This document shows positions 905-64,000 of a DNA stretch of 64,000 nt, one piece after another. The DNA comes from Rhodosorus marinus CCMP1338 (taxonomy: Eukaryota; Plantae; Rhodophyta), in contig JAMWBK010000012.1 in the NCBI GenBank assembly GCA_029953675.1, positions 1,091,868 through 1,155,867 of the forward strand, given 5' to 3'. The translations under genes and the position numbers were made by a program. The notes beneath the pieces were generated by a model. It made no database searches. It was given only the letters and a program-made list of their open reading frames with translations, and was not told the origin of the DNA. Numbering within the stretch: the first letter of the stretch is position 1; the number at the start of each line of letters is the position of its first letter.

Positions 905-905
905 G

Positions 906-917
906 TGGTCTCATCGC
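906..917 (+). promoter_or_regulatory. Primer-binding-site-like sequence TGGTCTCATCGC
   Basis: TGG starts 1 nt after the 5' LTR; the cognate tRNA was not identified. Confidence 0.65.
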
Positions 918-993
918 TCAAAGGTTTAAGAGGATACGAACGGAGGGAGGGGCGATCTAGCGGAAGCAGGAGGACTCGAGTAGCCAACTTCAA

Positions 994-1724: not shown

Positions 1725-1741
1725 CGGACTCCGGACGAGGG

Positions 1742-5095: not shown

Positions 5096-5114
5096 GTTTG
5101 CCCCCAAACTCTGC

Positions 5115-5122
5115 GGGAGGAA
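5115..5122 (+). promoter_or_regulatory. Polypurine tract GGGAGGAA
   Basis: Purine run abutting the 3' LTR. Confidence 0.7.
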
Positions 5123-5351
5123 TGTTAGAACTTGCCCTGACAGCTGTGTAATCTGTGTAAGACACTCCCTACTTTAGTGTAAGACACTCCCTACTTTAGT
5201 GTAAGACACTAGTGTGATAGTATCCAACAGTTTCTACTTTACTGTCAGGTACGTCTTAGTTTACAGTAACCAAGACTATATAAGACCTAGCTTTGCTAGA
5301 TCTTGAAACCTAGAATTAAGTAAAGACAAGTTGGTTAGAAGAGTTCTAACA
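5123..5351 (+). repeat. 3' LTR (229 bp, with an extra 22-bp tandem unit)
   Basis: Direct repeat of 699-904 with TGTAAGACACTCCCTACTTTAG duplicated. Confidence 0.97.
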
Positions 5352-24255: not shown

Positions 24256-24386
24256 TGTGCTCATAAGACCTGATTTTAAGACCCATCGTGGTGATGTTTA
24301 CTTCCTCTATCAATAAATCCACAGTATGGAGCATACTACCCAGGACCTTCTACTTATTCGAACAGCAGAGTCTCCCGATGAAGGGT

Positions 24387-28459: not shown

Positions 28460-28573
28460 GAATGAATTTGTTCAATCGGAGACTGAAGAAGAAGCCCCGA
28501 GGGGAAAAAAAAAGACTAAAAGCGGCAAAGATCGCGTGCTTCCAACATCACAAGCAGCGTTCATACGCCGCAG
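28460..28573 (-). mobile_element. 114-bp 5'-truncated family B-like insertion
   Basis: 10-bp TSD AGCTGAGAAT (28450-28459, 28574-28583); the empty site is preserved in the left arm (~25245-25265). Confidence 0.88.
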
Positions 28574-28744
28574 AGCTGAGAATAGGGAAGGGGTCTAGGC
28601 TGCAGTTCTCGTCTCTTGATGACTATAAATGCGAGCGAGCGATGTCATGACGCTGTGAGGATGTCGAAAAAGATTCAAACAAGGACAAGCAAGCAGAGTA
28701 GGAGACAAACGGCTTTGGGTTAAGAACAGAGGATTTCTGTAAAA

Positions 28745-29443
28745 ATGATGGCGAAGATGATGTTCGTTGCCGCGGCAGTTCTCGCGGTCACCGCGGTAGG
28801 ATCAGCGGTCCAACTGGATGACGTCGAGAGGATGAGCGACTCCAAGTGCAGTGGAAGTGCTATTTACAAGGTGGTCATTGACTATTTGTGGACCGGGGCT
28901 ACCCACCCCAACGCCTACCCATCAGATGGCCACTTCTCTCAGACCGTTGTTGCCTCTCACGGAATCGGATACCATGTCTGGACCCCACATGGATTCTCCA
29001 CCAAGGGTGTTGAGAATGTTGCTGAGATGGGAAAGATCGGCACCCTTTTGGACGAGTTGGAGAGCCAAAAGGGCCGTAACGTTTTTGACTTTGTATACAC
29101 GGAAGAGCCTACCGAGGATGGATCTCAGAGGGTCACTGTTCTCATCAAACTCGACAAATACCGCACCTACGCGTCGGCGATCGCTATGGCGGCACCGAGC
29201 CCGGACTGGTTCACTGGCTTCGACGATGTACAGTTGTGCAACGAGAGTCGTGGCAAATGGATTAAGAAATTCGAACAGAACCTGAGCGTTTGGGATGCTG
29301 GAACGGAGAAGGGAAACAGCTTCAGGATGAACAACAGGCCAACGAGGCCCCAGGAGCCGATTGTGTCGATCCTGGGATCTCGATTCGACGGAGTGCCTGT
29401 TGGATCGGTGAAGATCTCACTTGTGCGCACTCGGAGGAATTAG
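28745..29443 (+). CDS. Secreted Spondin_N domain protein, copy 2
   Basis: Identical to copy 1 except FRMNN versus FRTNN. Confidence 0.92.
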   Translation: MMAKMMFVAAAVLAVTAVGSAVQLDDVERMSDSKCSGSAIYKVVIDYLWTGATHPNAYPSDGHFSQTVVASHGIGYHVWTPHGFSTKGVENVAEMGKIGTLLDELESQKGRNVFDFVYTEEPTEDGSQRVTVLIKLDKYRTYASAIAMAAPSPDWFTGFDDVQLCNESRGKWIKKFEQNLSVWDAGTEKGNSFRMNNRPTRPQEPIVSILGSRFDGVPVGSVKISLVRTRRN

Positions 29444-29744
29444 ACCCTTCATCGGGAGACTCTGCCGTTCGAATAAGTAGAAGGTCCTGGGTAGTATGCT
29501 CCATACTGTGGATTTATTGATAGAGGAAGTAAACATCACCACGATGGGTCTTAAAATCAGGTATTACGAGCGCAAATGTAGCTAGGGTCGCTGGGAACAG
29601 GGATCCACTCATGGGGACTCGAAAGCCGCGAAGTTTTACCCAATTTATGAGCTCGACGAGACAACCTAGCGAACCCGGCCAGGTCCTTACATAGATTTCC
29701 AACCACTAGTTTGAAAAATTGGACTTTTCAAGGAAGCACACATC

Positions 29745-32599: not shown

Positions 32600-33120
32600 A
32601 TAATTTTAGACTTTCTTACACTTTTTAGACTTTATTACACTTTTTACACTTCCTTACTCTTTTTAGACTTTCTTACACTTTCTAGACTATCTTACCCCTT
32701 TTAGACTTTCTTACATTTTTCACTCTTTTTACACTTTTCTCACTTTTCACACTTTTCACACTTTTCACACTTTTCACACTTTTTGCACTTTTTGCACCTT
32801 TCCCAGTGTTTTTTCCTTTTACACTTTTAACACTTTTTAACACTTTCTAACACTTTCTAACACTTTTTAACACTTTTTAACACTTTTCACACTTTTTAAC
32901 ACTTTTCACACTTTTCACACTTTCCACACTTTCCACGCTTTCCACGCTTTCCACACCTTCCACACTTTCCACACTTTCCACACTTTCCACGCTTTCCACA
33001 CTTTCCACACTTTTTCACTCTTTTTTACACTTTTCCGGCTTTTTCCACTCTTTCCGCATTTTCCCCTTTTCCCATTTTTTCGCACTTTTTCGCACTTCCT
33101 CACACTTTTTTGCACTGCAT
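32600..33120. repeat. Pyrimidine-rich minisatellite (TTTTAGACTTTCTTACAC-like units, then ~9-bp CACACTTTY units)
   Basis: Directly visible tandem degenerate units. Confidence 0.85.
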
Positions 33121-38829: not shown

Positions 38830-39190
38830 GCCGTTCCTGAAAATAGTTTTACGAACACTCGGGTGGTCCTTCTCTATGTTGACTACCAGCAACAAATTGT
38901 TTTTTCCTTTGAAGCGTCAAAATCTGCTATTTTTAAACCTCCTACTAGGATAGTAGGAGAGATCCTAGGAGCAGTTGCAATAAGTGGGAGAGTACTACCT
39001 AGCCGATGTGAACCTTTCGCTTCATCCCAGACTAACGTAAAGCTCAGTAAACAAATTCAGTCAGTTCACATTCCGTCAAGTCCAATCCAAATGATTTTAG
39101 AGATTGAACTTAAGCCAATAAATAAATAAACAGTAAACGGAATTTTTTTTTTTTCAAAAACAGGTGGTTTCACTAGAGGTGGTGGTGGTT

Positions 39191-41282
39191 TTACTGGACT
39201 TTACTAGCATAGCCTGAAGCGCTACGCAGGGCGTGAAGATGAGCTAATAACTAGGGAGGGAAGCATGCAACCCCAGGCGCCGATGGTGCGCCTCGGAAAG
39301 CATGTCGCTGGAATATCGCCAAAGGGAGACACTTAAACGCCTCAAGAACGAATGGTTTAATCGGGGCTGAAAAAAAAAACCCCGAGGGGAAAAAAAGACT
39401 AAGCGCGGCGAAGTACTCGCGCCTCCAACATCAAAGCGGCATTCATGCGCCACAGCAGGAAACTTAAGCGGGTAAACAACGATTGAAGACGGTCAGGGCG
39501 TTCGCGGAACAACTCCCGAAGCCAGCGAGAACCAACAGAGTCCATGAACCCAAAGCACTCAATGATCAGGGGTACCAAGCGATGTGCTAGTGCCGAAGCA
39601 CGAACACCAGGGGAAGACAAAGCCCCCGCGTATTTGATCTCTTTGCGGCGTCTCATGCTGGCGGCGGCAGATCCACGGCGCTCCCCCGCAGCCGGGAGAT
39701 AACGACTAGCTTGAGGGTTAGGAACAGCAAGATCAACGTATGTGGTACGGCGGCTGTCGTCACAGGTGATCACCAGGTCGGCTACACGGCGTTCATCATT
39801 TTGAAAGTCCGCGACGGGTAAAGGTTTCTCACGTTCGATTTCCAGACCGGCTTGCCGGACTATAGGCCGAAGTTCCCGGTATAACAGGTTCAAGATCCGT
39901 GTATGGCGGCGGGTTCGAGCACCTTTCACCGCCGGGCAACTAGCGAGCATGTGGGCGCCAAAATCTGCGTTGTCTTCAGTCTGAGAGCAGAGAGGGCACG
40001 ACGAACCAATCTCGTACGGCCAAGGGGGCTGATGTAAGCCGAGGTATAAGCGCAGGGAAGTACGCACTTCGAAATCCGACAGTGTGAGTGGCGGAAAGGC
40101 TGGTACGGTCATGAGCCACTGAGAGCTAATAACCCCTCCAAGACTACGTAGGCGGGCGCGAGCGCGGGAAGATGAGACCATCTGCGCGAGGAGTCGGCCA
40201 TATGAAGCACGGTGCAAGTCCCAAGAAAGGATATTCTGCAGCGCATCCGTGCGTGCTTGAGCTCGGCTCCCAGCGCGCTGGGAATCATCAGGAGGATCAA
40301 CTGGAACTTCTTCTTCTGCGGGAGAGCGCCAAACATTCAGTAGGATGCTCAGCAAAACATTTCCGCAACCACTCTAAACCCGACTTATCCACGTGACCAA
40401 AGCTTTCCACAATGAATGGCTGGAACCGGTGAGAGCGACCCTCAGCGCAAGGCAGACTGGCCATGCTCTCAGCATACCGTCGTTCCTTAACTCTTCGAAC
40501 GGTTGAAGCCGCGGCCCCCCCGGCGGCGGGCGGCTGCGGTGAGGTGGGCGCTGGCCCCGGGGCAGGTAATCGCAAGGTCCACATATGTTGAGCGTCTGGC
40601 AGCAGCGTCGGAGACGAGGAGATCGGCTATACAACGGGGCGGTGCAGAGTCCGAGATTGATCTGGGCAGTTCCGACTCAACCTCAACCGTATGCCCTATC
40701 CGAGTCAAAAATTCGCTGAGGATGTACTTGAGGCGAGTGTGACGCCTCGTACGGAGACCTCTCAACAGTCCGCAGGAACCCAGGAAGTGGTAGCCACAAG
40801 CGTCAATCCGACTCTCACATCCCTGACAGAAAGACGGCCGATTAGAGTGCCACGGAGCCAGTGGCAAACCGAGATAGATCCGTGCGGCAGAACGGAACTG
40901 GAAAGCATCGAGCGGATGACTCAATGACGACGGTAGAGTGGTTAACCACAAGTGCGAGAGATGGCCTCCCATGCCGCGGAGACGAGCGGCAGTGATAGGC
41001 GGCGTGAGAGGAGAATTGAGCATGACTGTGTGAGCGGCACTGTGTTGGCCCCAGGTGAGGCTATGTTGAATCACATCAGTGCGGGAGCTCCACAATCGGC
41101 TCAAACCCGGGTAGTCTGCAACAGGGGACCCGGGGCTAGCCTCTCCGTCATCGGCAAGAACTCGGTCGAGGGGAGAATCCTCAATCGCTTCAGCTCGTCC
41201 CCATAACAGCTCCCTCCAGGAACGAAAGCGGGACCTATTTGCGTCCGGCACGGCGTTAAACCTCCTGAACGCGTGTTGAAGA
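39191..41282 (-). mobile_element. 5'-truncated family C element split by a family B insertion
   Basis: C sequence ctcaaga|gcgcc resumes at 40323 after the B block; tail ttactggactttactagc at ~39191. Confidence 0.9.
39348..40321 (-). mobile_element. 5'-truncated family B element nested in family C
   Basis: Near-identical to 16455-17430; AGA duplicated at 39345-39347 and 40323-40325. Confidence 0.92.
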
Positions 41283-42320
41283 GACTGAACTAGAGCGGGA
41301 GGTTTCGGCAGAACGCTCACCAGACACATACGAGCCGTCGGAGCAACGATGGTCGACTGCACAGCTGGCGGACCAGATCTGTGCATAGTCGCGAACAATA
41401 CAACGGAGGCTCGGACCAGAAACCCCGCCGCGGATCTCGGTTTTTGCAGGGTAACTACCCTGCAAAAACCGCGAGAAACATCTCTTCGAAGCGCACCGGG
41501 CGAGACTGCAGCTTGGAATAATGGTTCAATACATCAAACCCTCTCTCGAGAGGCACACCATTGTTCATTCCAAAGCTTGGTCACCAACCCACGAATCTCC
41601 CCTGAAAACCGAGCTCGAATACGGTCCGCCGCGGGATCCGGGTCGGGAGTCTGGCTGCGTGAAATACCAACGCTGACACCGAAAAAATTGAGTGCGGTTG
41701 AGATGCAGGTAAACGTTCGACAAGTGCTGGGGCCGCCAATTCCGGGATTGTTGACCACCGAGAAGTGCACTAGTTGCCGGAGTAAAAACGGAAGGACTGG
41801 GGTACAACGGTTTCATCACTGCCCAACATCAACTGGACTGTGGCAACGTAGGCACGACGAAATCTGCAGAGAGTTGGCAAGGTGGCTGAGGCGATGGCGG
41901 ATACGCGGCGAGAGCTGCGGAGAAGTGGAAAATCGCTCACTTCAAGGAAGCGATGGTGATCGAGAAACCGGATGACAAGTTCATCCCGATAGCGATAGAG
42001 ACGTTTGGGCGTACGGGGCAAATGGCACAAGAGTTCCTCCGCGACAGCTGCAAACACTTACTACACAGGAGTGAGGAGCCGAGAGACGTGAGATCGCAGA
42101 TAAACCGGCAACTATGGCGAGGTAACGCAGAGATAGCACTAGGCGCTTTGCGCGTGGACCAGTTGGAGAATCCGCTGGTGCCCGTTTTTTCTTTTGAACG
42201 TAGCATGAGACCCCGGTAGCGGGGTTCCAGTAAGTTTCTCCCTAGATAGGATTAGACGTAGTGTTGCGCTGCAGTAGGCAGCTGCCCAGTACAGCTTACG
42301 GTTACGTTATTCTGGGGTTA
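41283..42320 (+). mobile_element. Family A 3' fragment (knuckle, RLE, 3' UTR) ending in telomeric repeats
   Basis: CTSC...RFHHC, RRHDE, PIAIETFG; ends ggttacgttattctggggtta. Confidence 0.9.
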
Positions 42321-42618
42321 GTGCAGGCTTTGCCACGTCTTGGGGTAAGAGAGAAGATTTTGGACGGCCTTGTTTGTGGAAAACAACGGTAAAAGTTTAT
42401 ACACAGTTACACGTATGATTGTGAGGGAGGTACGCGGGCCGTACCCCGAACCTCTTGTGATCCCGGGCCTCGGGTACCCGGGAAATGGAGAATGAGCACC
42501 AGCAACAGCCTGCAGGAGACGCGCAGGAAGCTAGGACCATCGCAGATCTGAATTCATAAAACAGAGCAGAGAGGCAGGCTGCAGCCGACCCAGCCGCCGC
42601 TTTTCTCCATCAGCTACG
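42321..42618 (+). mobile_element. Family A 5' fragment (start of ORF1, ATG 42415), truncated
   Basis: atgattgtgagggaggtacgcgggccgtaccccgaacctcttgt is identical to 127-170. Confidence 0.85.
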
Positions 42619-42699: not shown

Positions 42700-45600
42700 T
42701 ACTGGACTTTACTGGACTTTACTGGACTGGACTTTACTAGCATAGCCTGAAGCGCTACGCAAGGCGTGAAGATGAACTAATAACTAGGGAGGGAAGCATG
42801 CAACCCCAGGCGCCGATGGCGCGCCTCGGAAAGCATGTCGCTGGAATATCGCCTAAGGGAGACACTTAAACGCCTCAAGAGCGCCAAATATTCAGTAGGA
42901 TGCTCAGCAAAACATTTCCGCAACCACTCTAAACCCGACTTATCCACGTGACCAAAGCTTTCCACAATGAATGGCTGGAACCGGTGAGAGCGACCCTCAG
43001 CGCAAGGCAGACTGGCCATGCTCTCAGCATACCGTCGTTCCTTAACTCTTCGAAGGGCTGAAGCCGCGGCCCCCCGGCGGCGGGCGGCTGCGGTGAGGTG
43101 GGCGCTGGCCACGGGGCAGGTAATCGCAAGGTCCACATATGTTGAGCGTCTGGCAGCAGCGTCGGAGACGAGGAGATCGGCTATACAACGGGGCGGTGCA
43201 GAGTCCGAGATGGATCTGGGCAGTTCCGACTCAACCTCAACCGTATGCCCTATCCGAGTCAAAGATTCGCTGAGGATGTACTTGAGGCGAGTGTGACGCC
43301 TCGTACGGAGACCTCGCAACAGTCCGCAGAAACCCAGGAAGTGGTAGCCACAAGCGTCAATCCGGCTCTCACATCCCTGACAGAAAGACGGCCGATTAGA
43401 GTGCCACGGAGCCTGTGGCAAACCGAGATAGATCCGTGCGGCAGAACGGAACTGGAAAGCATCGAGACGATGACTCAATGACGACGGTAGAGTGGTTAAC
43501 CACAAGTGCGAGAGGTGGCCTCCCATGCCGCGGAGACGAGCGGCAGTGGTAGGCGGCGTGAGAGGAGAATTGAGCATGACTGTGTGAGCGGCACTGTGTT
43601 GGCCCCAGGTGAGGCTATGTTGAATCACATCAGTGCGGGAGCTCCACAATCGGCTCAAACCCGGGTAGTCTGCAACAGGGGACCCGGGGATAGCCTCTCC
43701 GTCATCGGCAAGAACTCGGTCGAGGGGACAATCATCAATCGCTTCAGCTCGTCCCCATAACAGCTCCCTCCAGGAACGAAAGCGGGACCGATTTGCGTCC
43801 GGCACGGCGTTGCACCTCCTGAACGCGTGTTGAAGACCATCATAAATTGTCAAAAGCGGGGGCGGCAGGGTCACTGGATCCTCGTTGGTCAAAGCTCGAG
43901 CCAAGAGGCAGGCACTTCGCATCCGGAAGGTCACCAACGTTCGCAGCGCGGTAGCCCAGGAGGCAACCGCCGCTGGCGAGCATACCAGCCCACGGTCTGC
44001 GACGCCGAATCCCCCTAATCGCAACGGTAGAGCGATCTGTGCACGAATAAAGTCCCTGTCGGGAGCAGCTTCAAGATCGAGGGGCTCATCCAAGAGCGTT
44101 CCCCAGTGTTGCAGGGTCATTTCGTCGGCTTTAGCCGCGATCCACGAGCCCCAAGCTGGAGGCAGGCTGCGCAACCAGTAGTTGAGTCTGGGACCGGCAC
44201 AAAAGCGGGAAAGCAAGCAGGCCGATTGCAGCATGCTGTCGGGTAGGTGCTGAATGGCGTCGGTGAGTTGCTTGTGCCGTGCCAAAACTCGCTCGCAGGA
44301 TGCTTGGACAAAGTTGTCAGTCCCCAATCCGACGCCGTGGTGTTCGAACCCTTCACGTTCGCTGATTAGTCGCAGAGTGGGTGGCAGAGAGGTCAGCGAC
44401 ACGTCCCTCGGGGGGAGAAAGCGACATTTTTCTGTTTCCACAGTCAAACCGACGCGACGTGCAACGTGCAACGCCGTGCAAGCGGCCTTTACTAGCATAG
44501 CCTGAAGCGCTACGCAAGGCGTGAAGATGAACTAATAACTAGGGAGGGAAGCATGCAACCCCAGGCGCCGATGGCGCGCCTCGGAAAGCAGGACTTTACT
44601 AGCATAGCCTGAAGCGCTACGCAAGGCGTGAAGATGAACTAATAACTAGGGAGGGAAGCATGCAACCCCAGGCGCCGATGGCGCGCCTCGGAAAGCATGT
44701 CGCTGGAATATCGCAAAGGGAGACACTTAAACGCCTCAAGAGCGCCAAATATTCAGTAGGATGCTCAGCAAAACATTTCCGCAACCACTCTAAACCCGAC
44801 TTATCCACGTGACCAAAGCTTTCCACAATGAATGGCTGGAACCGGTGAGAGCGACCCTCAGCGCGAGGAAGACTGGCCATGCTCTCAGCATACCGTCGTT
44901 CCTTAACTCTTCGAAGGGCTGAAGCCGCGGCCCCCCGGCGGCGGGCGGCTGCGGTGAGGTGGGCGCTGGCCACGGGGCAGGTAATCGCAAGGTCCACATA
45001 TGTTGAGCGTCTGGCAGCAGCGTCGGAGACGAGGAGATCGGCTACACAACGGGGCGGTGCAGAGTCCGAGATGGATCTGGGCAGTTCCGACTCAACCTCA
45101 ACCGTATGCCCTATCCGAGTCAAAAATTCGCTGAGGATGTACTTGAGGCGAGTGTGACGCCTCGTACGGAGACCTCGCAACAGTCCGCAGGAACCCAGGA
45201 AGTGGTAGCCACAAGCGTCAATCCGGCTCTCACATCCCTGACAGAAAGACGGCCGATTAGAGTGCCACGGAGCCTGTGGCAAACCGAGATAGATCCGTGC
45301 GGCAGAACGGAACTGGAAAGCATCGAGACGATGACTCAATGACGACGGTAGAGTGGTTAACCACAAGTGCGAGAGGTGGCCTCCCATGCCGCGGAGACGA
45401 GCGGCAGTGGTAGGCGGCGTGAGAGGAGAATTGAGCATGACTGTGTGAGCGGCACTGTGTTGGCCCCAGGTGAGGCTATGTTGAATCACATCAGTGCGGG
45501 AGCTCCACAATCGGCTCAAACCCGGGTAGTCTGCAACAGAGGACCCGGGGATAGCCTCTCCGTCATCGGCAAGAACTCGGTCGAGGGGAGAATCCTCAAT

Positions 45601-48600
45601 CGCTTCAGCTCGTCCCCATAACAGCTCCCTCCAGGAACGAAAGCGGGACCGATTTGCGTCCGCCACGGCGTTGCACCTCCTGAACGCGTGTTGAAGACCA
45701 TCATAAATTGTCAAAAGCGGGGGCGGCAGGGTCGCTGGATCCTCGTTGGTCAAAGCTCGAGCCAAGAGGCAGGCACTTCGCATCTGGAAGGTCACCAACG
45801 TTCGCAGCGCGGTAGCCCAGGAGGCAACCGCCGCTGGCGAGCATACCAGCCCACGGTCTGCGACGCCGAATCCCCCTAATCGCAACGGTAGAGCGATCTG
45901 TGCACGAATCAAGTCCCTGTCGGGAGCAGCTTCAAGATCGAGGGGCTCATCCAGGAGCGTTCCCCAGTGTTGCAGGGTCATTTCGTCGGCTTTAGCCGCG
46001 ATCCACGAGCCCCAAGCTGGAGGCAGGCTGCGCAACCAGTAGTTGAGTCTGGGACCGGCACAAAAGCGGGAAAGCAAGCAGGCCGATTGCAGCATGCTGT
46101 CGGGTAGGTGCTGAATGGCGTCGGTGAGTTGCTTGTGCCGTGCCAAAACTCGCTCGCAGGATGCTTGGACAAAGTTGTCAGTCCCCAATCCGACGCCGTG
46201 GTGTTCGAACCCTTCACGTTCGCTGATTAGTCGCAGAGTGGGTGGCAGAGAGGTCAGCGACACGTCCCTCGGGGGGAGAAAGCGACATTTTTCTGTTTCC
46301 ACAGTCAAACCGACGCGACGTGCAATCGCTTCGATCGCGGTCAGTCCCCTAGCCAGGGTGTCAGGGGTGCCCAGCAATGTTACGTCATCGTGGTACGCGC
46401 AGATTCGAAGATCCGAGACCTCAGTCGAAAGACGTAAAAGTACGAGCTGTAGGGCACAGGCATGAAGAAGAGGTCCGCAAGGGTCGCCTTGTTGGACGCC
46501 AGTATGTGCTTGAAAAACAGTGCCCTCCGTTGTCAAGTAGGGGAGGCTCTCCCCTCCGTAAATACCCGATAGAAACGGCCACGCCTCCGGAAACACACGT
46601 CGGAGCACCTCTAGCGCATGCGTCCGCGACACGCTGTTGAATGCGTTCCGGAAATCAACCACCAAGACTCCCCACTCCGGCCTACTGGCGCGTTCTAGCT
46701 CGATCCCATGGGTGATCAGTTCACAACCCCCAGAAAATCCCACCCCTACTTGCAAGGGCGCCATAAAAGCTGTGACGCGCTGGCGAAGGCGCTGGCATAG
46801 CCACCTCCCGGCTAACTTCCGTAGGCTCTCCACCATCCCGATCGGCCGGAGACGCGGGTGGGCCGGCTGGTGGTCAGGTTTCGTGAGCAAGCAAAGCTGT
46901 GCCTGCCGGAGATGTTCCTATGGCGCAGACGCACCCGATACGCCCTGGAACAACTTGTTAAGGATCCTCAGAGGCGCGCTCTTGCCAGGCTGGCTCAGGG
47001 CCTGCAATAGCTCTGTTCTTAGTCCGGAGGGTCCGGGACAGCGTCCCCGACGCGAGGTACGAAGCAAATCCTCCAGGTCAGACTCACTGAGCGTCAGATC
47101 GATGCGAAACCTGGCCAACTCCGGACGGTCCAAGAATGCCTCGAATTCAGGGGACAAATCCACGTCGGACTCAGGGAACAAAGACGACACCGTCTGGGCG
47201 AGACTATCATCGTAGGGAAGGACAGGCGCCTGGCCCTCCAAAACCCGCGCCGCTCGACTTAAATCGCCCACTGCTACCAATTTCTGTACTCGAGCCGGCA
47301 CGGGCGACACTGTGCCATGCCGAGTCCGACGGGCGGATGGTGCTGACGACGCCAAATAGCTGCGCTGTAGTACTTCGAAGTCTCCCTTCAAGAACAGGGC
47401 CAGTCGGTCTCGTACTCGCCATCTGCGCTCCGATGTGTGAATGGGGGCCAGAATCAGGCGCGGCATGACCCCCAGAAAAACCCAAATGACTGTGTCCCGA
47501 ATGTTGCGAGCCAGGCTCGTGAAGATGAAATCGAGAATGGTTCCAGCTACTAGAAGGTCTCCACGAGGAAGGACTTTACTGGACTTTACTGGACTTTACT
47601 AGCGGACTTACTAGCGGACTTTACTGGACTTTACTAGCATAGCCTGAAGCGCTACGCAAGGCGTGAAGATGAACTAATAACTAGGGAGGGAAGCATGCAA
47701 CCCCAGGCGCCGATGGCGCGCCTCGGAAAGCATGTCGCTGGAATATCGCCAAAGGGAGACACTTAAACGCCTCAAGAGCGCCAAATATTCAGTAGGATGC
47801 TCAGCAAAACATTTCCGCAACCACTCTAAACCCAACTTATCGACATGACCAAAGCTTTCCACAATGAACGGCTGGAACCGGTGAGAGCGACCCTCAGCGC
47901 AAGGCAGACTGGCCATGCTCTCAGCATACCGTCGTTCCTTAACTCTTCGAAGGGCTGAAGCCGCGGCCCCCCGGCGGCGGGCGGCTGCGGTGAGGTGGGC
48001 GCTGGCCACGGGGCAGGTAATCGCAAGGTCCACATATGTTGAGCGTCTGGCAGCAGCGTCGGAGACGAGGAGATCGGCTATACAACGGGGCGGTGCAGAG
48101 TCCGAGATGGATCTGGGCAGTTCCGACTCAACCTCAACCGTATGCCCTATCCGAGTCAAAAATTCGCTGAGGATGTACTTGAGGCGAGTGTGACGCCTCG
48201 TACGGAGACCTCGCAACAGTCCGCAGGAACCCAGGAAGTGGTAGCCACAAGCGTCAATCCGGCTCTCACATCCCTGACAGAAAGACGGCCGATTAGAGTG
48301 CCACGGAGCCTGTGGCAAACCGAGATAGATCCGTGCGGCAGAACGGAACTGGAAAGCATCGAGACGATGACTCAATGACGACGGTAGAGTGGTTAACCAC
48401 AAAAGCGAGAGGTGGCCTCCCATGCCGCGGAGACGAGCGGCAGTGGTAGGCGGCGTGAGAGGAGAATTGAGCATGACTGTGTGAGCGGCACTATGTTGGC
48501 CCCAGGTGAGGCTATGTTGAATCACATCAGTGCGCGAGCTCCACAATCGGCTCAAACCTGGGTAGTCTGCAACAGGGGACCCGGGGCTAGCCTCTCCGTC

Positions 48601-49123
48601 ATCGGCAAGAACTCGGTCGAGGGGAGAATCCTCAATCGCTTCAGCTCGTCCCCATAACAGCTCCCTCCAGGAACGAAAACGGGACCGATTTGCGTCCGGC
48701 ACGGCGTTGCGCCGGCGGAGGGGCTACGCAAGGCGTGAAGATGAACTAATAACTAGGGAGGGAAGTATCTGTAGTGGACTTTACTAGCATAGCCTGAAGC
48801 GCTACGCAAGGTGTGAAGATGAACTAATAACTAGGGAGGGAAGCATGCAACCCCAGGCGCCGATGGCGCGCCTCGGAAAGCATGTCGCTGGAATATCGCC
48901 AAAGGGAGACACTTAAACGCCTCAAGAGCGCCAAATATTCAGTAGGATGCTCGGCAAAACATTTCCGCAACCACTCTAAACCCGACTTATCCACGTGACC
49001 AAAGCTTTCCACAATGAATGGCTGGAACCCGTGAGAGCGACCCTCAGCGCAAGGCAGACTGGCCATGCTCTCAGCATACCGTCGTTCCTTAACTCTTCGA
49101 AGGGCTGAAGCCGCGGCCCCCCC
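42700..49123 (-). mobile_element. Head-to-tail array of six 5'-truncated family C copies
   Basis: 3' ends at ~42700, 44487, 44591, 47571, ~48723 and 48776; lengths about 1.78, 0.10, 2.93, 1.14, 0.05 and 0.35 kb. Confidence 0.92.
44617..47500 (-). pseudogene. Longest family C ORF2 fragment (RT, knuckle, RLE); in-frame TAG at 46918-46920 and a 1-bp deletion near 44715
   Basis: CPGPSGLR, RPIG, VDFRNAFN, GVQQGDP, AYHDD; ORFs 46918..47466 and 44617..46890 are in the same frame. Confidence 0.9.
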
Positions 49124-49172
49124 GTTATTGCACATCCCGATGGACTCTTGCTCCATCGGGATGTGCAATAAC

Positions 49173-50702
49173 TATTAAGATCAAAAGGGTGTTGCACCTC
49201 CAGAGATTTTGGCACAGCCCGAGCATAATTTTGCATAGCCGGACATTGCTGGAAGGTGGAGACGTCACACACTACGCAGAAGCATTCCCAGTCATCGGGA
49301 CCAGCAGCACACGGACAACGTACGCTCAGCGCACTGTCCAAAATACTCCAGCTCCAGAATCAGAGGCTCAACTCCGACCAGCAGGACGCCCGGGCTCACA
49401 GACCCAGCAGGCAGCGCTGCGACAGCTGCACACCACAGTGGGAGGGTCCTCCTGGGGACCTGAAACCAAACCGATCCTTGCCACCCTTCGAAACGTCCCC
49501 CCCCCCCCAAGGCAGGATGATGTGGCACCTTCGGAATTCACCACCGTCCTCTGGCGCGCGCTGGGAATCACAGCCTCTCACATCGCGCATGTGGACTTCA
49601 TGTTACACACGCAAGCTTGCTCTGCCATCCGGATGCAGTGTGCAAAGCGCTATCGCCCGAGGCGTTTTCAGAACAGGGATCTTTGGATCTTTCACACTGA
49701 GACATCCTGACCGGCAAGTGACTCTCCACACAGGACAGGGATTGGAGGCTGACAACCTGCTGGGCTACAACGAAAGGCAAAGGATCGCCCCAGAGGAGAT
49801 CCCAGCCCAGACGCTGCAACGGGCCATACAACAGATCATCAGGATTCGCGCGAGGTTCGGAAAGAGACGTCTGTCGTTCTCTACTCTCGCAGCCATCCAT
49901 GAAACGCTGGTAGAGCGTCTACGAGCGTTACGAGGCCTGCAACATCCACCAGCGGTCGCCTGGGAGAGTGTGGAACTTAGTCTGGGGTACACGATCGCAC
50001 CGATGTACGGTGTGTGAACAACCACACGACTTCAAAGGGATCCAGCGTTTGCATCATTGTCGCACATCATCAGGTATGCGAACTAAGCGTCACGATGAGC
50101 TAAAAACGGAGTTGAGTCGATGGTTGCATCTGTGGAATTTCACAGACTTGCAAGTGGAACCGCAGGGGTTCTTTAGGTAATCAGGGATACGCCCTGACAT
50201 AGTAGGGAGACACCCAACAAGTGGACACGTGTACGTGTTGGACGTGATGGTGACGTCACCACTGCAGCGACAACACTTGCGACAGACCAGCTGGAAGAGT
50301 GGGTATGCGGCAGAGAAAGCAGAACATAGCAAAGTGGCACATTATGCGGAAGCAATCTCGAATGAGGGGGAGAGAGCTGATTTTAGCACAATTTGTGGTC
50401 GAAACCTATGGGCGACCTGACCAGAAGGGCTGGAGTTCCTTCGAAAAGCCACGGCACATCTCCATGATCGGGAGTCGCATTTATCGCCGGTGAGAGAACA
50501 ATTGAATCGTATCCTATAGCAACACAACGCACAGTTGGTACAACACGCGATTGACAAAGACCGGGCAGACCTGTCGATACTCCCACTAGCTAGAAGTTAG
50601 ATGAGACCCCTGGACAGGGGGTCTATAAGTGAGTTTAGAGCGAAGATAGAGTAGTGGTATTTCGCTACGGTAGTTAGCTGCCGAATGAAGGGTATGGGGT
50701 TA
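49173..50702 (+). mobile_element. Diverged family A-type element with a large internal deletion (ORF1 piece joined to knuckle/RLE), ending in GGGGTTA
   Basis: HYAEAFP ORF1 homology; C..C..HHC, RPDI..LDV; 3' UTR gtagtg...cggtagttagctgccgaat. Confidence 0.8.
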
Positions 50703-53520
50703 CCACCACCGTTCCTAAAAGCTCTACGAACAAAGTTCTCCGATTTAACGACTGTCGCTATCCATGACGATATTACGATCGTGGGACCGCTGCAGGGACT
50801 GAAGCAAGACCTAGCCTGGAGCCGAACTATGCTCCCATCTCTAGGGGCCCGCCTACTACTCAACAAATGCACGCTCTACGGCCGAGCCTTGACGACGGCG
50901 CGAGTCATCAATCGCGAGATACCTGGCATACATGTCACCCGAGAAGGTGTGACTATCCATTCGATCCGGATAGGAAACCGGGAATATATCGAGCACGAGT
51001 GCCGTGCGCTTCAAAATAAGCACGAAAAGCTCATCAAGGAAATAGCACAGCTACCGCAACATGAACTTAACGCACAGGTCGCATTGTTCAGGTACTGCGC
51101 GGAAACGCGGCTAGATTACCTGCTACGATGCCTAGCCTACTCGTTCGGCCGCAGTCTGGCACGGGAGGGGGACACCATGACGAGATATAATCTGGAAACC
51201 TTGCTCGGAGGCCTCGCTACCTGTGGCATGGAGGACGAGGAGCACCTGGGACACATGTGGGAACAGATTGCGCTGACTTTGCCGGTGGGGGGGATTAGGG
51301 TTCGCTACTAGACGGCGTATCCAACCGATCGCTTACTACTCGGCTTGGACAAATACCTTTCGAAGCAATACAGGCGACTGGCCTTACATTACTGAGCTGC
51401 AGAGGCAGGTCTATACAGATAGAACTCCGGCTACGAACACCGCGACACGACTACAATGGTCCACAGAACACCTTGCAGACCAGATAAAATCATCTGCTCG
51501 AGCGATGCGACGCAGGCTGCGGCCCGAAACTCTGCCGCGGATCAGAAGACTGGCCACCCTGCAGCAGACGAGGGAAAACCCCCGAGGAGACGCCCCAGAA
51601 GACTGTGGCGATTGGAATAATGGTTCTACACAACAAACTTGATGAGCTTTTCGTGCTTATTTTGAAGCGCACGGCACTCGTGCTCGATATATTCCCGGTT
51701 TCCTATCGGGATCGAATGGATAGTCACGCCTTCTCGGGTGACATGTATGCCAGGTATCTCGCGATTGATGACTCGCGCCGTCGTCAAGGGCTCCGATCGA
51801 GCTCAGCTTTTTCGACTCCAACGTCGGCAGTTCGCGCAGCCAGACTCCCGATCAAGAGCCCGCCGCGGACCTGATTCGAGCGCGATGTTCGCCAGAGATG
51901 GGCGGATTGTTAACCAGGCGTTTGGAACGCTGAATGGCGTGCCTCCCGAGAGAGATAGCACAGCTACCGCAACATGAACTTAACGCACAGGTCGCATTGT
52001 TCAGGTACTGCGCGGAAACGCGGCTAGATTACCTGCTACGATGCCTAGCCTACTCGTTCGGCCGCAGTCTGGCACGGGAGGGGGACACCATGACGAGATA
52101 TAATCTGGAAACCTTGCTCGGAGGCCTCGCTACCTGTGGCATGGAGGACGAGGAGCACCTGGGACACATGTGGGAACAGATTGCGCTGACTTTGCCGGTG
52201 GGGGGGATTAGGGTTCGCTACTAGACGGCGTATCCAACCGATCGCTTACTACTCGGCTTGGACAAATACCTTTCGAAGCAATACAGGCGACTGGCCTTAC
52301 ATTACTGAGCTGCAGAGGCAGGTCTATACAGATAGAACTCCGGCTACGAACACCGCGACACGACTACAATGGTCCACAGAACACCTTGCAGACCAGATAA
52401 AATCATCTGCTCGAGCGATGCGACGCAGGCTGCGGCCCGAAACTCTGCCGCGGATCAGAAGACTGGCCACCCTGCAGCAGACGAGGGAAAACCCCCGAGG
52501 CGACGCTCCAGAAGACTGGCGATTGGAATAATGGTTCTACACAACAAACTCTCTCTCGGGAGGCACACCATTCAGCATTCCAACGCATTGTTAACAATCC
52601 GCGCATCTCTGGCGAACATCGCTCTCGAATCAGGTCGGCGGCGGGCTCTGGATCGGGAGTCTGGCTGCGCGAACTGCCGACGTTGGAGCCGAAGAAGCTG
52701 AGCTCGATCGAAATGCAGGTGAATATCCGACAACTACTGGGGCTACCGATTCCAGGGCTGCGAACTACGGAAAAATGTACTCGATGCCGTGGTAAACACG
52801 GCATCGCCTCAAATGGAGTACAACGCTTTCATCATTGCCCCACGTCGACTGGGCTGTGGCAACGTAGGCATGACGAGATATGCACGGAGATCGCAAGGTG
52901 GCTGAACCGGTGGAACTTTGTGGACATCGAGCAGGAGCCAGAGAAGTACTTTGAAAATTACGGGCTACGGCCAGACATCATTGCTACGCATCCGAGGACA
53001 TTTCAACGGTATGCGCTGGACGTGACGGTTGTGTCTCCTTTGCAAGGGAAGTATCTGAGGCGTAGTCAGGATGAGAGTGGATATGCAGCAAGATGTGCGG
53101 AGAGGTGGAAGAAAGTGCACTACAAGGAGGCGATGACGATAGAACACCCGGATGACAAGTTCATCCCAATTGCAATAGAAACATTTGGGCGGACTGGACC
53201 GATGGCACAGGAGTTTCTGCGGGACAGCTGCAAGCATTTGTTGCACCGGAGCCTAGATCTGAGCGATTTAAGATCGCAGATAAACCGGCAACTTTGGCGA
53301 GGTAATGCGGAGATAGCGCTAGGCGCTTTGCGCGTAGACCAGTTGGAGAATCCACTGGTGCCTGTTTTTTCTTTAGAACGTAGGATGAGACCCCGGTAGC
53401 GGGGTTGGAGTAAGCATTCCCCTAGATAGCGATAGAAGTAGTGTTACGCTGCAGCAGGCAGCTGCCCAGTAAAGTTTACGGTTACGTTAGTCTGACGTTA
53501 GTCTGGGGAGTCTGGGGTTA
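50703..53520 (+). mobile_element. 5'-truncated family A element with an internal duplication and inversion, ending in telomeric repeats
   Basis: VAIHDD, intact RLE ORF 52683..53399 (RPDII..LDV, K..HY, PIAIETFG), tail ggttacgttagtctg. Confidence 0.9.
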
Positions 53521-53958
53521 CGAACGTTAAGGGGCTAACAAGGACAAATATACGATGAGGTTTAAGGAAAGCTTTATGATCGAGAAGGAGATGCTGGGAC
53601 AGTACCCAGAACCTTTCCGCCACCCGGGCACCAATGGCCCTGGCCCAGGCGAAGAGGGGATGGCGACACCGAATGGGAGTCGGATGCCAGAACCGAGCGG
53701 CAGGACCACAATCACCCAGGATTTACAAGCAGCGAACACACAGGAGGCTTACGGGATGGAGACTCAAGAGGCAACTGGACCTGCGGCAGCCTTTTTGCAC
53801 CAACTTCGCGCCTTCGACCAGTGCTATCAGGACTTGGGAATTGGTGAAGCAGTTATCGCGGACTTCTACCAGGCTGTATTCAAACTCTACTCACGGATTA
53901 ACAGCACCACTGAACTCGAAGGAATTACCGCACGTCTCTCCGAGCTTTCAGCAAAACC
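53521..53958 (+). mobile_element. Family A-type 5' fragment (ORF1 N terminus), truncated
   Basis: GQYPEP and AFLHQLRAFDQCYQDLGI...FYQAVFKLYSRINS match ORF 127..753. Confidence 0.85.
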
Positions 53959-53972
53959 TTAGTCTGGGGTTA
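53959..53972 (+). repeat. Interstitial telomeric repeat TTAGTCTGGGGTTA
   Basis: 14 of 14 match to the terminal repeat. Confidence 0.85.
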
Positions 53973-55410: not shown

Positions 55411-58301
55411 GAATGAATGAATGAATGAATGAATGAATGAATGGTTTAATCGGAGGCTGAAAAAAAAACCCCGAGGGGAAAAAAAGACTAAGCGCGGCGA
55501 AGTACTCGCGCCTCCAACATCAAAGCGGCATTCATGCGCCACAGCAGGAAACTTAAGCGGGTAAACAACGATTGAAGACGGTCAGGGCGTTCGCGGAACA
55601 ACTCCCGAAGCCAGCGAGAACCAACAGAGTCCATGAACCCAAAGCACTCAATGATCAGGGGTACCAAGCGATGTGCTAGTGCCGAAGCACGAACACCAGG
55701 GGAAGACAAAGCCCCCGCGTATTTGATCTCTTTGCGGCGTCTCATGCTGGCGGCGGCAGATCCACGGCGCTCCCCCGCAGCCGGGAGATAACGACTAGCT
55801 TGAGGGTTAGGAACAGCAAGATCAACGTATGTGGTACGGCGGCTGTCGTCACAGGTGATCACCAGATCGGCTACACGGCGTTCATCATTTTGAAAGTCCG
55901 CGACGGGTAAAGGTTTCTCACGTTCGATTTCCAGACCGGCTTGCCGGACTATAGGCCGAAGTTCCCGGTATAACAGGTTCAAGATCCGTGTGTGGCGGCG
56001 GGTTCGAGCACCTTTCACCGCCGGGCAACTAGCGAGCAGGTGGGCGCCAAAATCTGCGTTGTCTTCAGTCTGAGAGCAGAGAGGGCACGACGAACCCATC
56101 TCGTACGGCCAAGGGGGCTGATGTAAGCCGAGGTATAAGCGCAGTGAAGTACGCACTTCGAAATCCGACAGTGTGAGTGGCGGAAAGGCTGGTACGGTCA
56201 TGAGCCACTGAGAGCTAATAACCCCTCCAAGACTACGTAGGCGGGCGCGAGCGCGAGAAGATGAGACCATCTGCGCGAGGAGTCGGCCATATGCAGCACG
56301 GTGCAAGTCCCAAGAAAGGATATTTTGCAGCGCATCCGTGCGTGCTTGAGCTCGGCTCCCAGCGCGCTGGGAATCATCAGGAGGATCAACTGGAACTTCT
56401 TCTTCTGCGGCAACCACTGGGTCAATCTCCCCTAGAACAGGTTCAGGCGCAGGACGAATCCCCGGGGCGGAGCCTCGAGAGCGGTCAAATACAGCTCGCC
56501 AGTCAGGAAGACGGGGTTGAACGGTTTCGGGGAGACTAGTACAGGAATTCAGGGCGGTTTGGAGCTCCAGAAACAAGTCTTGGGCGCTTTCCGGTACGCT
56601 GGGAAGCAAGACACCCCGCGAGAGGCTCGCCATCAAATTGCGGAACTTCGAGATACCCAAGCTGCTCAAAGTGGGAAGTGCGGTTCCCCAGGCCCCTACT
56701 GCAGCTGCAGGTTGGACCACAACACGATTGCAGAGGCCCAGTCCCCCCAATCGCAATGGGAGGCCTACCTGGGCGCGCACAACATCACAGGTGGGTCGCG
56801 GCAGAGCGCTCAGCTCTTCATCGAGAAAATACCCCAGGTCACGGAAACTTTCAGCATCCGCACGAGTGGCCAACCACCGGCCCCAATGAGTTGGAAGTGA
56901 GCGAAGCCAATAGGTTAACCGCTGACTGCAACAATACCGAAACAGCAACAACGAGCACTGGAGAAAGCCCGGAGGTAGCCGTCGAAGCTCTGCAACCAGC
57001 TGTCTGTGCTTACCGAGGAGCTGCAGCAACTCGCCTTCAACGAAGGACGGCGACCCGTAGGGGATGCCTAAGTGGACAAAACCATCCGGTCTCCAAATAT
57101 CCTGGAACGACGCAGGTACCTGCTGCTCTTGTGCAGCTACACCTCCCCAGTAGAACGATTTGTGATGATTAACCTCCAGGTCAACCCGCGAAGCCAAGGA
57201 GCGGAGACGATCATAAGCGAGTGCTAGAGTATCAGGGGGCCCCAGGAGGCACACGTCGTCGTGGTATGCAACCGTACGAACCTGCGGGAATTCGGAGCGA
57301 AGACAAAGCAAGACGAGTTGTAGTCCACAGGCATGTAGGAAAGGGGACAAGGGATCACCCTGTTGTACCCCTGTGCGCGCCGCAAACGTGTGTGAGGAAG
57401 CGCCAAGGGTGTCATAGGTAGCCCCACGACCAAGCGGAGAATAAATTCTACTAACAAAGGGAAAGCCTACAGGGAAGACTTCGCGCACCACGTGCATGAG
57501 AGCCGGACGAGAGACGCGGTTGAACGCATTGGTAAAATCTACAGAGAGGAGCCCAGAATCTGGGGAGAACGCCATTTCCGAACGGAGTAAAACAGACAAC
57601 AACTCACAGCCACCACGATAGCCCACGCCTAACTGCACGTGCCCAAAGAAACGGCGGGATTCGGGAACCAGGATTTTCACTAACCATCGCGCCGCCAATT
57701 TGCGGACCACCTCAACCAGGCCAATAGGGCGAATAGCAGGGCTCGAGGCCGTGTGGCCGGGCTTCGAAAGCAGACACAACTGCGAACGCCCGACCAAGAA
57801 CCACGCACACTCACACAGGGGATCACCATTCACAAGCGCTTCGACCACCCACGCCAACGCCTTCAAACCTTCATCACTTAAGAAACGGAGATATTCCACC
57901 CGCAGCCCCGAGGGCCCTGGGGAACGGCCCTTCGGAGCATCATGAACCAACTCACGCACCGCCTCCAGATTGACCACTAACCGCGCACTGGGATGTGGCG
58001 CGGCGCGGTACTCTTCCAACACTGATTCAAACGAGGAGTCCCAAGGGGAGCCTTCCGAGGGAAAGAGCAAACGGAGCGGTGAAGAAAGATCATCGGAGTA
58101 TGGAACCACAGGTTGCCGCTGCTGGAGGATCCCGGCTGCCCGCCGCAGATCACCGCCTGCCACCGCGTGACGCGCCCGATTCTGTCGAGAAGACCTAAAA
58201 GCTGAGGAAGCACTAGGAGAAAAGGAAGAGAGAGAAGCGAAATAAAGACGTTCGAGGTCCTCAAAGTCGCCGGAAAGGAACATTTGCAGTTTTCGGCGAG
58301 G
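55411..58301 (-). mobile_element. 5'-truncated family B element with (GAAT)8 tail on + and an intact RT-RLE frame (55488..58283)
   Basis: Near-identical to 16460-19320; possible TSD TATGAAT (55408-55414, 58306-58312). Confidence 0.95.
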
Positions 58302-61180: not shown

Positions 61181-61600
61181 CCAATGCAGATGGGAAAACT
61201 CCGAATGCTTCCAGACAGAAGGGGATGAAGATGTCGTCGTTGTGTTCTCCGATACTGTCACGGTATTGGGACTCTTTAACCATTTCCGCTTTGTGTGCCG
61301 CATACTGTGTCTCCCAAGACGCTTTGTATAGGTGTGTTCTTTGCAACGGCGAGGTCACCTTAACATCGATGACGTAGAGCTTGTCTGTTCGTGGGTGTCG
61401 AGCTAGGATGTCAGGCCCGAGCCGTTTGGTAGTGTCCAGTCGGTTCTACTGTCACTTCTAGTCGCCATTGTCTCAGCACTGTCGCCAGTGCATCCCTGAC
61501 CATATTGTGTCGAAGTGTCCAGCTCCCCAGACTAACGTAACCCCGTAGCCTTTATTCGGCAGCTACCTACCGCAGGGCCATATCACTACTCTATGTACCC
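61180..61600 (-). mobile_element. Inverted family A-type RLE fragment and an inverted A 3' UTR with a telomeric repeat (61525-61544)
   Basis: HLYKASWET..KESQYRDS..PFCLEAFG; CCCCAGACTAACGTAACCCC abuts the reverse complement of gcggtaggtagctgccgaataaaggcta. Confidence 0.82.
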
Positions 61601-62510: not shown

Positions 62511-62639
62511 GGAAAAATAATCGATAAGAAAATCTTGGAATTTGAGTCCCATTTTTGAGCGCATTTCAATCTGCCAACGGTTTTTTTTCTGGTATTCCAA
62601 GTCGGCCTTTTCGCTGTTTCCCGACTCAGAAGTGGGGTC

Positions 62640-63518
62640 GATTGTGGCACGTCTCCCTCAGGGCAAGAGCCCAGGCCCTAGCGGACTCTGGGCGGAACAC
62701 ATACAAGGTGCAACTCAACATACACAAGTGGCATTGATTCGAGTACTGCGACAACTCGCAACCGCTTCGGAGAAATTCTCCCCGACTCTGACTCCCGCCC
62801 CTCGCAGCAGCAGACTCCTACCATTCGCGAAGCCAAACAAGGATCCGCACCCCAAGAAAACCCCGGCGTTCGGCCTATCGGCGCACAAGAGGTTCTACGA
62901 AAGATAGCGACGCAGTGGGCCCTTCGCGCTGTGGTCGACCGGGTGCGTGAGCTCCTGGTACCACTACAACTCGGTATTGGCGTCAGCGGCGGGTGTGAAC
63001 GCTCGCTACATGCGATCCAGGCCCACTTGTCATGCGAACCTCATTCAGCGGTCCTCAGGCTTGACCTGGAGAATGCATTTAACCGAAGTTCTGGGGGAAC
63101 ACACCTCCACAAAGCGTCTTGGGAGACCGGGTATGCGGCACGGAAAGCGGAAAAGTTTAAAGAGTCCAAATACCGTGACAGTATCGGAGAACATAACGAC
63201 GACATCTTCGTCCCCTTCTGCCTGGAAACATTTGGGCAGATGGGACAACAAGCGAGTGAGTTCCTCAAGGAAGCGACTATACACCTGGATCAGCGGGCAA
63301 CGCAAGTAAGTGAGGCTCGGGCGATCTTGAACCGCACTTTGTGGAAAGGAAACGCTATCCTTGCCACCCAGGCACGTCGTGTCGACGAAGCAGACTATGA
63401 CATCGTCCCTATCTTAGAACGTAGCCACACAACCCATTAGGGGTTTCTTTGCTGACCAATAGGATCCTTATTGCTTCTTAATGGGCTCCAATAGGGAGTT
63501 CTTCAGTAAAGTGTACGC
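62640..63518 (+). mobile_element. Terminal family A-type element: RT N-terminal half joined in frame to the RLE and 3' UTR
   Basis: PQGKSPGPSG...LDLENAFNR followed directly by HLHKASWET...PFCLETFG; the 3' UTR runs into the telomere. Confidence 0.85.
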
Positions 63519-64000
63519 GGTTACGTTAGTCTGGGGTTACGTTAGTCTGGGGTTACGTTAGTCTGGGGTTACGTTAGTCTGGGGTTACGTTAGTCTGGGG
63601 TTACGTTAGTCTGGGGTTACGTTAGTCTGGGGTTACGTTAGTCTGGGGTTACGTTAGTCTGGGGTTACGTTAGTCTGGGGTTACGTTAGTCTGGGGTTAC
63701 GTTAGTCTGGGGTTACGTTAGTCTGGGGTTACGTTAGTCTGGGGTTACGTTAGTCTGGGGTTACGGGGTTACGTTAGTCTGGGGTTACGTTAGTCTGGGG
63801 TTACGTTAGTCTGGGGTTACGTTAGTCTGGGGTTACGTTAGTCTGGGGTTACGTTAGTCTGGGGTTACGTTAGTCTGGGGTTACGTTAGTCTGGGGTTAC
63901 GTTAGTCTGGGGTTACGTTAGTCTGGGGTTACGTTAGTCTGGGGTTACGTTAGTCTGGGGTTACGTTAGTCTGGGGTTACGTTAGTCTGGGGTTACGTTA
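63519..64000 (+). repeat. Telomeric array (TTAGTCTGGGGTTACG)n, about 30 units
   Basis: Homogeneous G-rich tandem array at the window end with one short variant unit; no repeats beyond the window could be seen. Confidence 0.9.

Follow-up and report, generated by a model that had tools for sequence, protein, structure and literature searches.

Long telomerase-templated repeats maintain chromosome ends in budding yeasts, in which the unit is 16 nt in Candida glabrata and 23-25 nt in C. albicans and K. lactis; PMC8211666 and PMC7857110 provide the broader background. We know of no telomerase RNA from a red alga. Red-algal telomere sequences are 'mostly missing or fragmentary', and the candidates are AATGGGGGG in Cyanidioschyzon, TTATT(T)AGGG in Galdieria and TTAGGG reads in Porphyra (PMC7046594); a dedicated search for the Galdieria telomerase RNA failed (PMC8287931). 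In Allium, the unit is CTCGGTTATGGG (12 nt), one of the unusual motifs of plants, and the length of such motifs reportedly let the land-plant telomerase RNA be found (PMC6765143). Several retroelements are associated with telomeres. SART1 and TRAS1 of Bombyx mori are LINEs that are specific for telomere repeats (PMC7265360). MoTeR (Magnaporthe), FoTeR (Fusarium), Cnl1 and CRE/SLACS, which are fungal or trypanosomatid, combine a reverse transcriptase (RT) with a REL of the CCHC/RHD...E...R/KPD...D/E type and lack LTRs, and we further note one large ORF and insertion into the telomere repeats of chromosome ends (PMC12857005); their targets are TTAGGG-type repeats or spliced-leader genes. The terminal-addition elements HeT-A/TART and the Penelope-like Athena have no endonuclease, and their 3' ends face the centromere, since it is the chromosome end that primes their reverse transcription.

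Here, we analysed a stretch of 64,000 nt (the window), which is the last 64,000 bases of JAMWBK010000012.1 (1,155,867 bp), a chromosome-scale contig of Rhodosorus marinus CCMP1338 (GCA_029953675.1). The first-pass annotation of this DNA had reported a homogeneous array of 16-mers with its G strand outward, and both points are borne out. TRF detects one tandem array from 63519 to 64000, with a period of 16, 30.6 copies, 96% matches and a score of 908, and an exact parse resolves its 482 bp into 15 perfect GGTTACGTTAGTCTGG units (63519-63758), an 8-nt half unit GGTTACGG (63759-63766), 14 more perfect GGTTACGTTAGTCTGG units (63767-63990) and a 10-nt partial copy GGTTACGTTA (63991-64000) that runs off the window. 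GGTTACGTTAGTCTGG is the unit first given as TTAGTCTGGGGTTACG, rotated into another register. Its composition on the plus strand is G6 T6 A2 C2, including a GGGG run, so the G/T-rich strand reads 5' to 3' toward the window end and the G-rich strand of the array points outward, toward the chromosome end. The unit does embed GTTA twice, as had been noted (GGTTAC and CGTTAG), and it retains the canonical GGGTTA core with about 10 more bases. Allowing up to 3 mismatches, 34 unit matches were found in the window compared to 0.35 expected from shuffles. The end of the window is made up as follows:
62542-63518, plus strand: terminal remnant of a C' retroelement, in which an internal deletion has joined an RT-motif region to the last part of the REL domain and the 3' UTR is retained (from ORFs and mosaic matches); its 3' end ...CAGTAAAGTGTACGC abuts the array
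63519-64000, plus strand: terminal array (GGTTACGTTAGTCTGG)n (from TRF and the exact parse), ending on the last base of the contig

The array resembles budding-yeast telomeres in having a long, homogeneous G/T-rich unit with few C, in being terminal and a few hundred bp long, and in a presumed template of more than one unit. It differs from them in lineage (Rhodophyta, Stylonematophyceae), in its unrelated sequence and in keeping the GGGTTA core. With the red-algal candidates it shares the phylum, the in silico detection at sequence ends and the G-richness, whereas those candidates are 6-10 nt long and only the TTA/GGG(G) core is common to both. As in Allium, the unit is unusually long within Archaeplastida, which makes the template easy to find in transcriptomes, but it is longer than that of Allium and belongs to another lineage. 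To our knowledge, 16 nt is the longest telomere motif proposed for Archaeplastida. The suggestion that the unit was undescribed agrees with our searches: no paper in the literature searched contains it, the red-algal candidates in reviews do not exceed 10 nt, and when that literature was searched with all 11-mers of both strands of the unit, the only matches were chance ones to primers, without telomere context.

The window had also been described as retroelement-rich, and it contains RT ORFs of at least three non-LTR families as well as one Ty3/gypsy element. Copies of one of these families, family C (or C'), and tracts of the 16-nt unit were compared with those at the opposite end of the same contig, for which we used the locus of the gene P0128 (L009; record 819-21397, reversed, with its plus strand pointing outward). 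Besides the terminal remnant and array, the window contains:
1-73, plus strand: family C-like 3' end (1-36) and degenerate telomere tract (37-73) ending ...TAGTCTGGGGTTA
74-697, plus strand: C3, an old copy of family C, with its 5' end at full length and ORF1
39026-39040, minus strand: 15-nt inward tract TTACGTTAGTCTGGG bordering the unique gene block and the retroelement block
41284-42299, plus strand: family C element C2, 5'-truncated
42300-42320, plus strand: 21-nt tract GGTTACGTTATTCTGGGGTTA (16 + 5 nt) between the C2 3' end and the family C 5' end that starts at 42321
49123-53479, plus strand: family C element C1, rearranged, with RT ORF at 50685-51311, REL-endonuclease ORF at 52683-53399 and 3' end ...CAGTAAAGTTTAC
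53480-53522, plus strand: 43-nt irregular tract of three partial units between the C1 3' end and the next family C 5' end
53524-53958, plus strand: family C 5' end (5' UTR and start of ORF1) right after the telomere tract, 3'-truncated at 53958 (from alignment with 74-640 and the L009 copy)
53959-53972, plus strand: 14-nt tract TTAGTCTGGGGTTA capping this 3'-truncated family C 5' part
61525-61594, minus strand: 20-nt inward tract GGGGTTACGTTAGTCTGGGG (61544-61525) after a family C-like 3' end (61545-61594)

C3 is split by the Ty3/gypsy element and resumes at 5353-~8540. The Ty3/gypsy element (698-5352) lies in ORF1 of C3 and is complete, with LTRs at 698-906 and 5123-5352, TG...CA ends, a 5-bp target-site duplication (CACTA), gag at 994-1491 and pol at 1742-4687 (protease, RT, RNase H and integrase). 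The 'MRFKESF' block at 53524-53958 was considered as unique host DNA or as a Ty3 gag, and both were rejected; because the Ty3/gypsy LTRs were recognised inside C3, the block could be identified as the 5' end and ORF1 of family C. The tract next to this block enters a gene: the last five codons and the stop (ILTPD*) of P0127 (53959-54528, minus strand; annotated, 189 aa, secreted-looking) come from the C strand of the tract. A paralogue of P0127, NDN08_004849, which is 59% identical, is found in the opposite subtelomere of JAMWBK010000012.1.

Interstitial unit tracts of 12-44 nt occur in both subtelomeres of the contig, and most of them face outward. In the window, they are located on the plus strand at 61-73, 42300-42320 (one mismatch), 49977-49988, 53480-53522 and 53959-53972, and on the minus strand at 61544-61525 and 39040-39026. 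In L009, the outward-facing tracts lie at 10982, 11006, 11039, 11674, 11696, 12431 and 16002, and two tracts face inward; L009 10994-11191 matches window 42288-42491. The interior tracts hold 0.7-2.7 units; a long array (30 units) exists only at the very terminus, where it faces outward. At a control locus at 1.03 Mb on contig 1, there is a single 14-nt tract, located at the 3' end of a related element. As to irregular units, the half unit at 63759-63766 is the sole irregularity of the terminal array, reads ...GGGGTTAC|GGGGTTACG... and equals one unit without GTTAGTCT; other partial units are present in the interior tracts at 53480-53522 and at L009 13331 and 15994. A template boundary was sought from these irregular units, and none was inferred since their breakpoints are inconsistent.

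Family C/C' encodes two ORFs, ORF1 (e.g. 127-697) and ORF2, which has RT motifs and a C-terminal endonuclease domain and carries the full REL signature C-x2-C...HHC-x9-RHD...E...RPD-x16-D. The CCHC and PD-(D/E)XK (REL) motif, as defined for CRE, SLACS and MoTeR (PMC12857005), is present in families C, A and B. An AlphaFold model of the family C REL domain has a core pLDDT of 80-94, and in a fold search with this model the top seven PDB matches are all R2 proteins (probability 1.0, E-values 3e-6 to 2e-4). Pfam RVT_1 hits were obtained for family A and family B ORFs, as well as for one family C copy (7624-8538, below the curated cut-off), and the best PDB sequence matches of the family A RT are R2 proteins, followed by LINE-1 ORF2p. 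Family C has no LTRs, complete 3' ends without poly(A), variable 5' truncation (copies at 41284-42299, L009 11717-12430 and from L002 2226 onward) and fixed target junctions; an AP-endonuclease domain was absent from all window ORFs searched with Pfam. On these features, family C/C' is an R2/CRE-type site-specific non-LTR retrotransposon, a classification made without phylogenetic placement. The RT with a CCHC-type REL, the lack of LTRs, the large ORF and the insertion into telomere repeats are points of likeness to MoTeR, FoTeR, Cnl1 and CRE/SLACS; unlike these fungal and trypanosomatid elements, it is a red-algal family that targets a 16-mer. Its best solved relatives, by fold and by the sequence of the sister-family RT, are animal R2 proteins, again without placement in a phylogeny. 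Family C is not a terminal-addition element of the HeT-A/TART or Athena kind, since it has an endonuclease and its 3' end faces outward.

The other families of the window were examined as well. Family B (RT and REL) forms directly abutting, head-to-tail, variably 5'-truncated copies at 42721-49122 (minus strand) and is also present at 39188, 59085 and 12030. Its 3' ends at 42721, 44582, 47618 and 48768 face the centromere and have 10-nt tails, (AGTAAAGTCC)n, of 1-5 copies each; after the one at 42700 comes GGGGTTACG (42695-42687). Family A (1140-aa ORF, RT and REL) has copies at 16480-19930, 39370-40355 and 55460-58283 (-), with (TCAT)n or (TTCG)n microsatellites as 3' tails, and the 100% identity of its copies over the segments compared suggests that it was active recently. 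No family A ORF is annotated in the NCBI record. Since this record leaves the retroelement ORFs unannotated, exact look-ups of the 931-aa RT and of the Spondin_N ORF of the window found nothing on record. The 232-aa Spondin_N ORF is found in each arm (24387-25085, minus strand, and 28745-29443, plus strand) of a 1-kb inverted repeat whose arms, 24252-25257 and 28573-29578, are 99% identical; the copy at 24387-25085, which is unannotated in L007, is the sole one within an annotated locus examined. A degenerate 9-nt satellite, (TTTTACACT)n, extends over about 500 bp (32604-33116) and has higher-order periods of 18, 27 and 57 nt.

Sulfatase genes with a PKD domain (window 13499-15163, minus strand; L008; L010) make up one family, whose members are located at the inner edge of both contig 12 subtelomeres, ~49 kb and 59-66 kb from the ends; the copy inside contig 1 is 83% identical to that of the window. 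The 21 kb that surround the sulfatase are free of unit tracts. P0008, its closest paralogue, was considered as a further chromosome end and rejected since it is internal, at 1.03 Mb on contig 1. Directly downstream of the contig 1 sulfatase gene, L010 12005-12140 (JAMWBK010000001.1, ~1.036 Mb, internal) contains the 3' end of a B/C-like retroelement and, after it, a telomere-like tail of 14 nt, GTTACGTTAGTCTG, and a tail at this internal site indicates that an element related to family C can carry about one unit along.

The junctions between family C and the unit are in fixed registers. The family C 3' end is followed by GGTTACG... in seven independent cases (window 42300, 53480 and 63519; L009 11006, 11696 and 12431; and the transcript contig L002). 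In addition, of the 20 independent tracts, 11 stop precisely at ...GGGGTTA (if the register were uniform, binomial P = 6e-9), and in most of these a family C 5' end comes next, either full-length or 5'-truncated. One C' copy of 714 bp (L009 11717-12430) is flanked by units, ...GGGGTTA | element | GGTTACG..., and spacers of exactly 21 nt (16 + 5) separate head-to-tail elements at window 42300, at L009 12431 and in L002. Since units lie on both sides of the C' copy and 5' ends are placed at a fixed site of the unit, the repeat predates the insertion. Judging from the sequence alone, the fixed-register junctions are what site-specific target-primed reverse transcription leaves behind when the array is already in place. 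Family C would enter the unit between TTA and CG, and its 3' end would point toward the chromosome end; the G-strand break would fall between TTA and CG, and GGTTA would be either a 5-bp duplication or supplied by the element. The exact nick positions of the endonuclease are inferred. Since the sense 3' end of family C always joins the G strand, the C-rich strand would prime reverse transcription. In L009 10980-13400, telomere tracts have received at least five insertions or abortive insertions one after another; among them, one 'element' is reduced to the final 5 nt (TACGC) of C' and a second to the final 12 nt (GTAAAGCTTACG) of C.

The joining of the 3' end to the G-strand repeat with C-strand priming is as in SART1 (PMC7265360), and, as with SART1/TRAS1, insertion takes place at one position of the telomeric unit and elements accumulate proximal to the terminal array. 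In contrast to SART/TRAS, which have an N-terminal AP-like endonuclease and poly(A), family C carries a C-terminal REL, lacks poly(A) and merges with the unit at its 3' end. Thus, family C works like SART1 yet is no member of SART/TRAS.

The unit was also found in transcript contigs of an independent R. marinus culture (JGI 3300016967; protein with an MMETSP label). In these transcripts, an element 3' end is followed by CGTTACGTTAGTCTGGGGTTA and then by another family C copy, and the sequence downstream of the 21-nt spacer in L002 is a 5'-truncated family C copy. The 20-nt tract in the transcripts is identical to the window unit, whereas the flanking element is only ~71% identical, which fits a host-templated sequence better than the drifting tail of an element.

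In two family C copies, the 3' side is missing from different points onward (window 53958 and L009 11673), and the unit caps these copies in different registers (...CAGCAAAACC | TTAGTCTGGGGTTA and ...CTGGGAA | TACGTTAGTCTGGGGTT, respectively), and an intact family C copy continues as element sequence at both points. Since target-primed insertion always keeps the 3' end, we read these caps as erosion of the chromosome end into the element and subsequent de novo repeat addition; the evidence for this is suggestive, and deletion is an alternative. Our data establish that the array exists, that it is terminal in the assembly and how it is oriented; they also establish the registers in which the junctions are fixed, the fold of the endonuclease and the healing-type junctions. 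Taken together, these results make it likely that the array is the natural telomere of an R. marinus chromosome, made by telomerase and also used as a target by family C/C'. Telomerase is invoked on the grounds of terminal location, strand polarity, array homogeneity and healing-type junctions, and synthesis by telomerase from a long template is probably the most economical mechanism; it is inferred, in the absence of data on a template RNA or TERT.

Since the sister families carry tandem tails of their own, a tail made by a retroelement must be considered. The 16-mer would then not be made by telomerase and would be a tandem 3' tail and self-target of family C, reiterated by its own RT, with the chromosome end maintained by retrotransposition or recombination. 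The terminal array comes directly after the C' 3' end, the last bases of the element (TTACG) are already unit-like, the sister-family tails in the window are reiterated in units of 4 and 10 nt, (TCAT)n and (AGTAAAGTCC)n, the internal insertion on contig 1 carries about one unit, and both contig ends appear to finish with the same element. We nevertheless regard a family C tail as unlikely, because the copies in the interior have no more than 2.7 units and only the 30-unit array is exactly terminal and outward, and because the variable-register caps sit on 3'-truncated elements without an element 3' end upstream, which a tail cannot explain. Moreover, the unit-flanked copy and the fixed 5' site imply that the repeat existed before insertion, and known restriction-like-endonuclease elements are reported to target pre-existing host repeats (PMC4640811). 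A partnership in which retroelement and telomerase count equally in keeping the chromosome ends, and which in its extreme form would have an R2-like RT reiteratively copy the 16-mer from the 3' end of family C RNA, remains open because the same 100% identical element is present at both visible ends, its last bases merge with the unit and the sister tails are reiterated. We consider it quite improbable; if true, the extreme form would represent an extant intermediate that links a site-specific retrotransposon with telomerase.

The telomere interpretation further depends on the array being at a chromosome end, as the first-pass annotation had implied, and this holds at the level of the assembly, without Bal31 or read-level data. 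R. marinus proteins are the closest relatives both of a host sulfatase and of one retroelement ORF. The sulfatase P0007 at window 13499-15163 corresponds to record 1105366-1107030 of the 1,155,867-bp contig in the same orientation, and window position 64000 is therefore base 1,155,867, the last of JAMWBK010000012.1. At the opposite end, P0128, a paralogue of P0127 (the last annotated gene of the window), lies 10.8 kb from the contig start. L009 stops inside a copy of the terminal C' element that faces outward, 818 nt from the contig start: window 63097-63245 is 100% identical to L009 20431-20579 over 149 nt, and window 63097-63539 is likewise 100% identical to L009 12009-12451. Between the matching point within C' and the edge of the contig lie 755 nt in the window, at the contig end, and 818 nt at the contig start, from which we infer a terminal array of ~545 nt after C' at the contig start if the rest of the copy is the same, these 818 bases being unread. 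The presence of the 16-mer on all other chromosome ends is also an inference, since no second end was read directly. In the assembly paper (Nat Commun 2023;14:3363, PMC10250338), telomeres are reported on 12 contigs, and six contigs are scored as telomere-to-telomere; the accessible text and supplements do not give the unit, so the 'telomere sequences' there cannot be proved to be the 16-mer. Its authors had thus noted telomeres, and the unit, its length and its canonical core are undescribed in the text searched, as is a telomere-specific REL retrotransposon.

With terminality supported by the assembly only, and with long-read assemblers able to stop in repeats, the array could be a minisatellite inside the chromosome in which the assembly broke off by chance, with no chromosome end present. 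This is very improbable given that the strand orientation is that expected of a telomere, the authors scored telomeres on 12 contigs, the opposite end of JAMWBK010000012.1 has a mirror-image arrangement (an outward-facing C' and many outward-facing unit tracts), the neighbourhood has a typical subtelomere make-up, and the array, at just 482 bp, is well below long-read length. A sequencing or assembly artefact (adapter or chimeric concatemer), which the position at the very contig end and the nearly perfect homogeneity might suggest, deserves almost no credence: it is effectively refuted by the short unit tracts inside both subtelomeres and on contig 1 and by the unit in independently sequenced transcripts of another culture, and exact two-unit scans of viral and prokaryotic genome collections gave no matches.

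Under the preferred reading, a telomerase-made telomere that is also a family C/C' target, telomerase would lay down the unit from an RNA template of at least ~17-24 nt containing CCAGACTAACGTAACC in some register, which is inferred. The terminal array would double as a dedicated landing site for family C/C', and repeated insertion, terminal erosion and re-capping would produce a retroelement-rich subtelomere with short internal telomere tracts. Rfam identified no RNA family in the window, and when JGI metagenome and transcriptome contigs were scanned with the 18-mer TAGTCTGGGGTTACGTTA, which has the G run at its centre, neither an array nor a template-like RNA turned up in that register; the only two matches were chance matches in bacterial coding sequence (L005 and L006). 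The length of the 16-nt motif makes the red-algal telomerase RNA directly searchable, and a search for more than one unit of the complement in one genome or transcriptome should find it. The 16-mer is also the correct motif, on this reading, for scoring telomere-to-telomere completeness in Stylonematophyceae assemblies. Family C appears to have acquired telomere targeting independently, which a phylogenetic placement has not yet tested, and it would represent a natural and highly specific 'safe-harbour' integration system in an alga, with a 16-bp recognition context, comparable to R2, SART and MoTeR.
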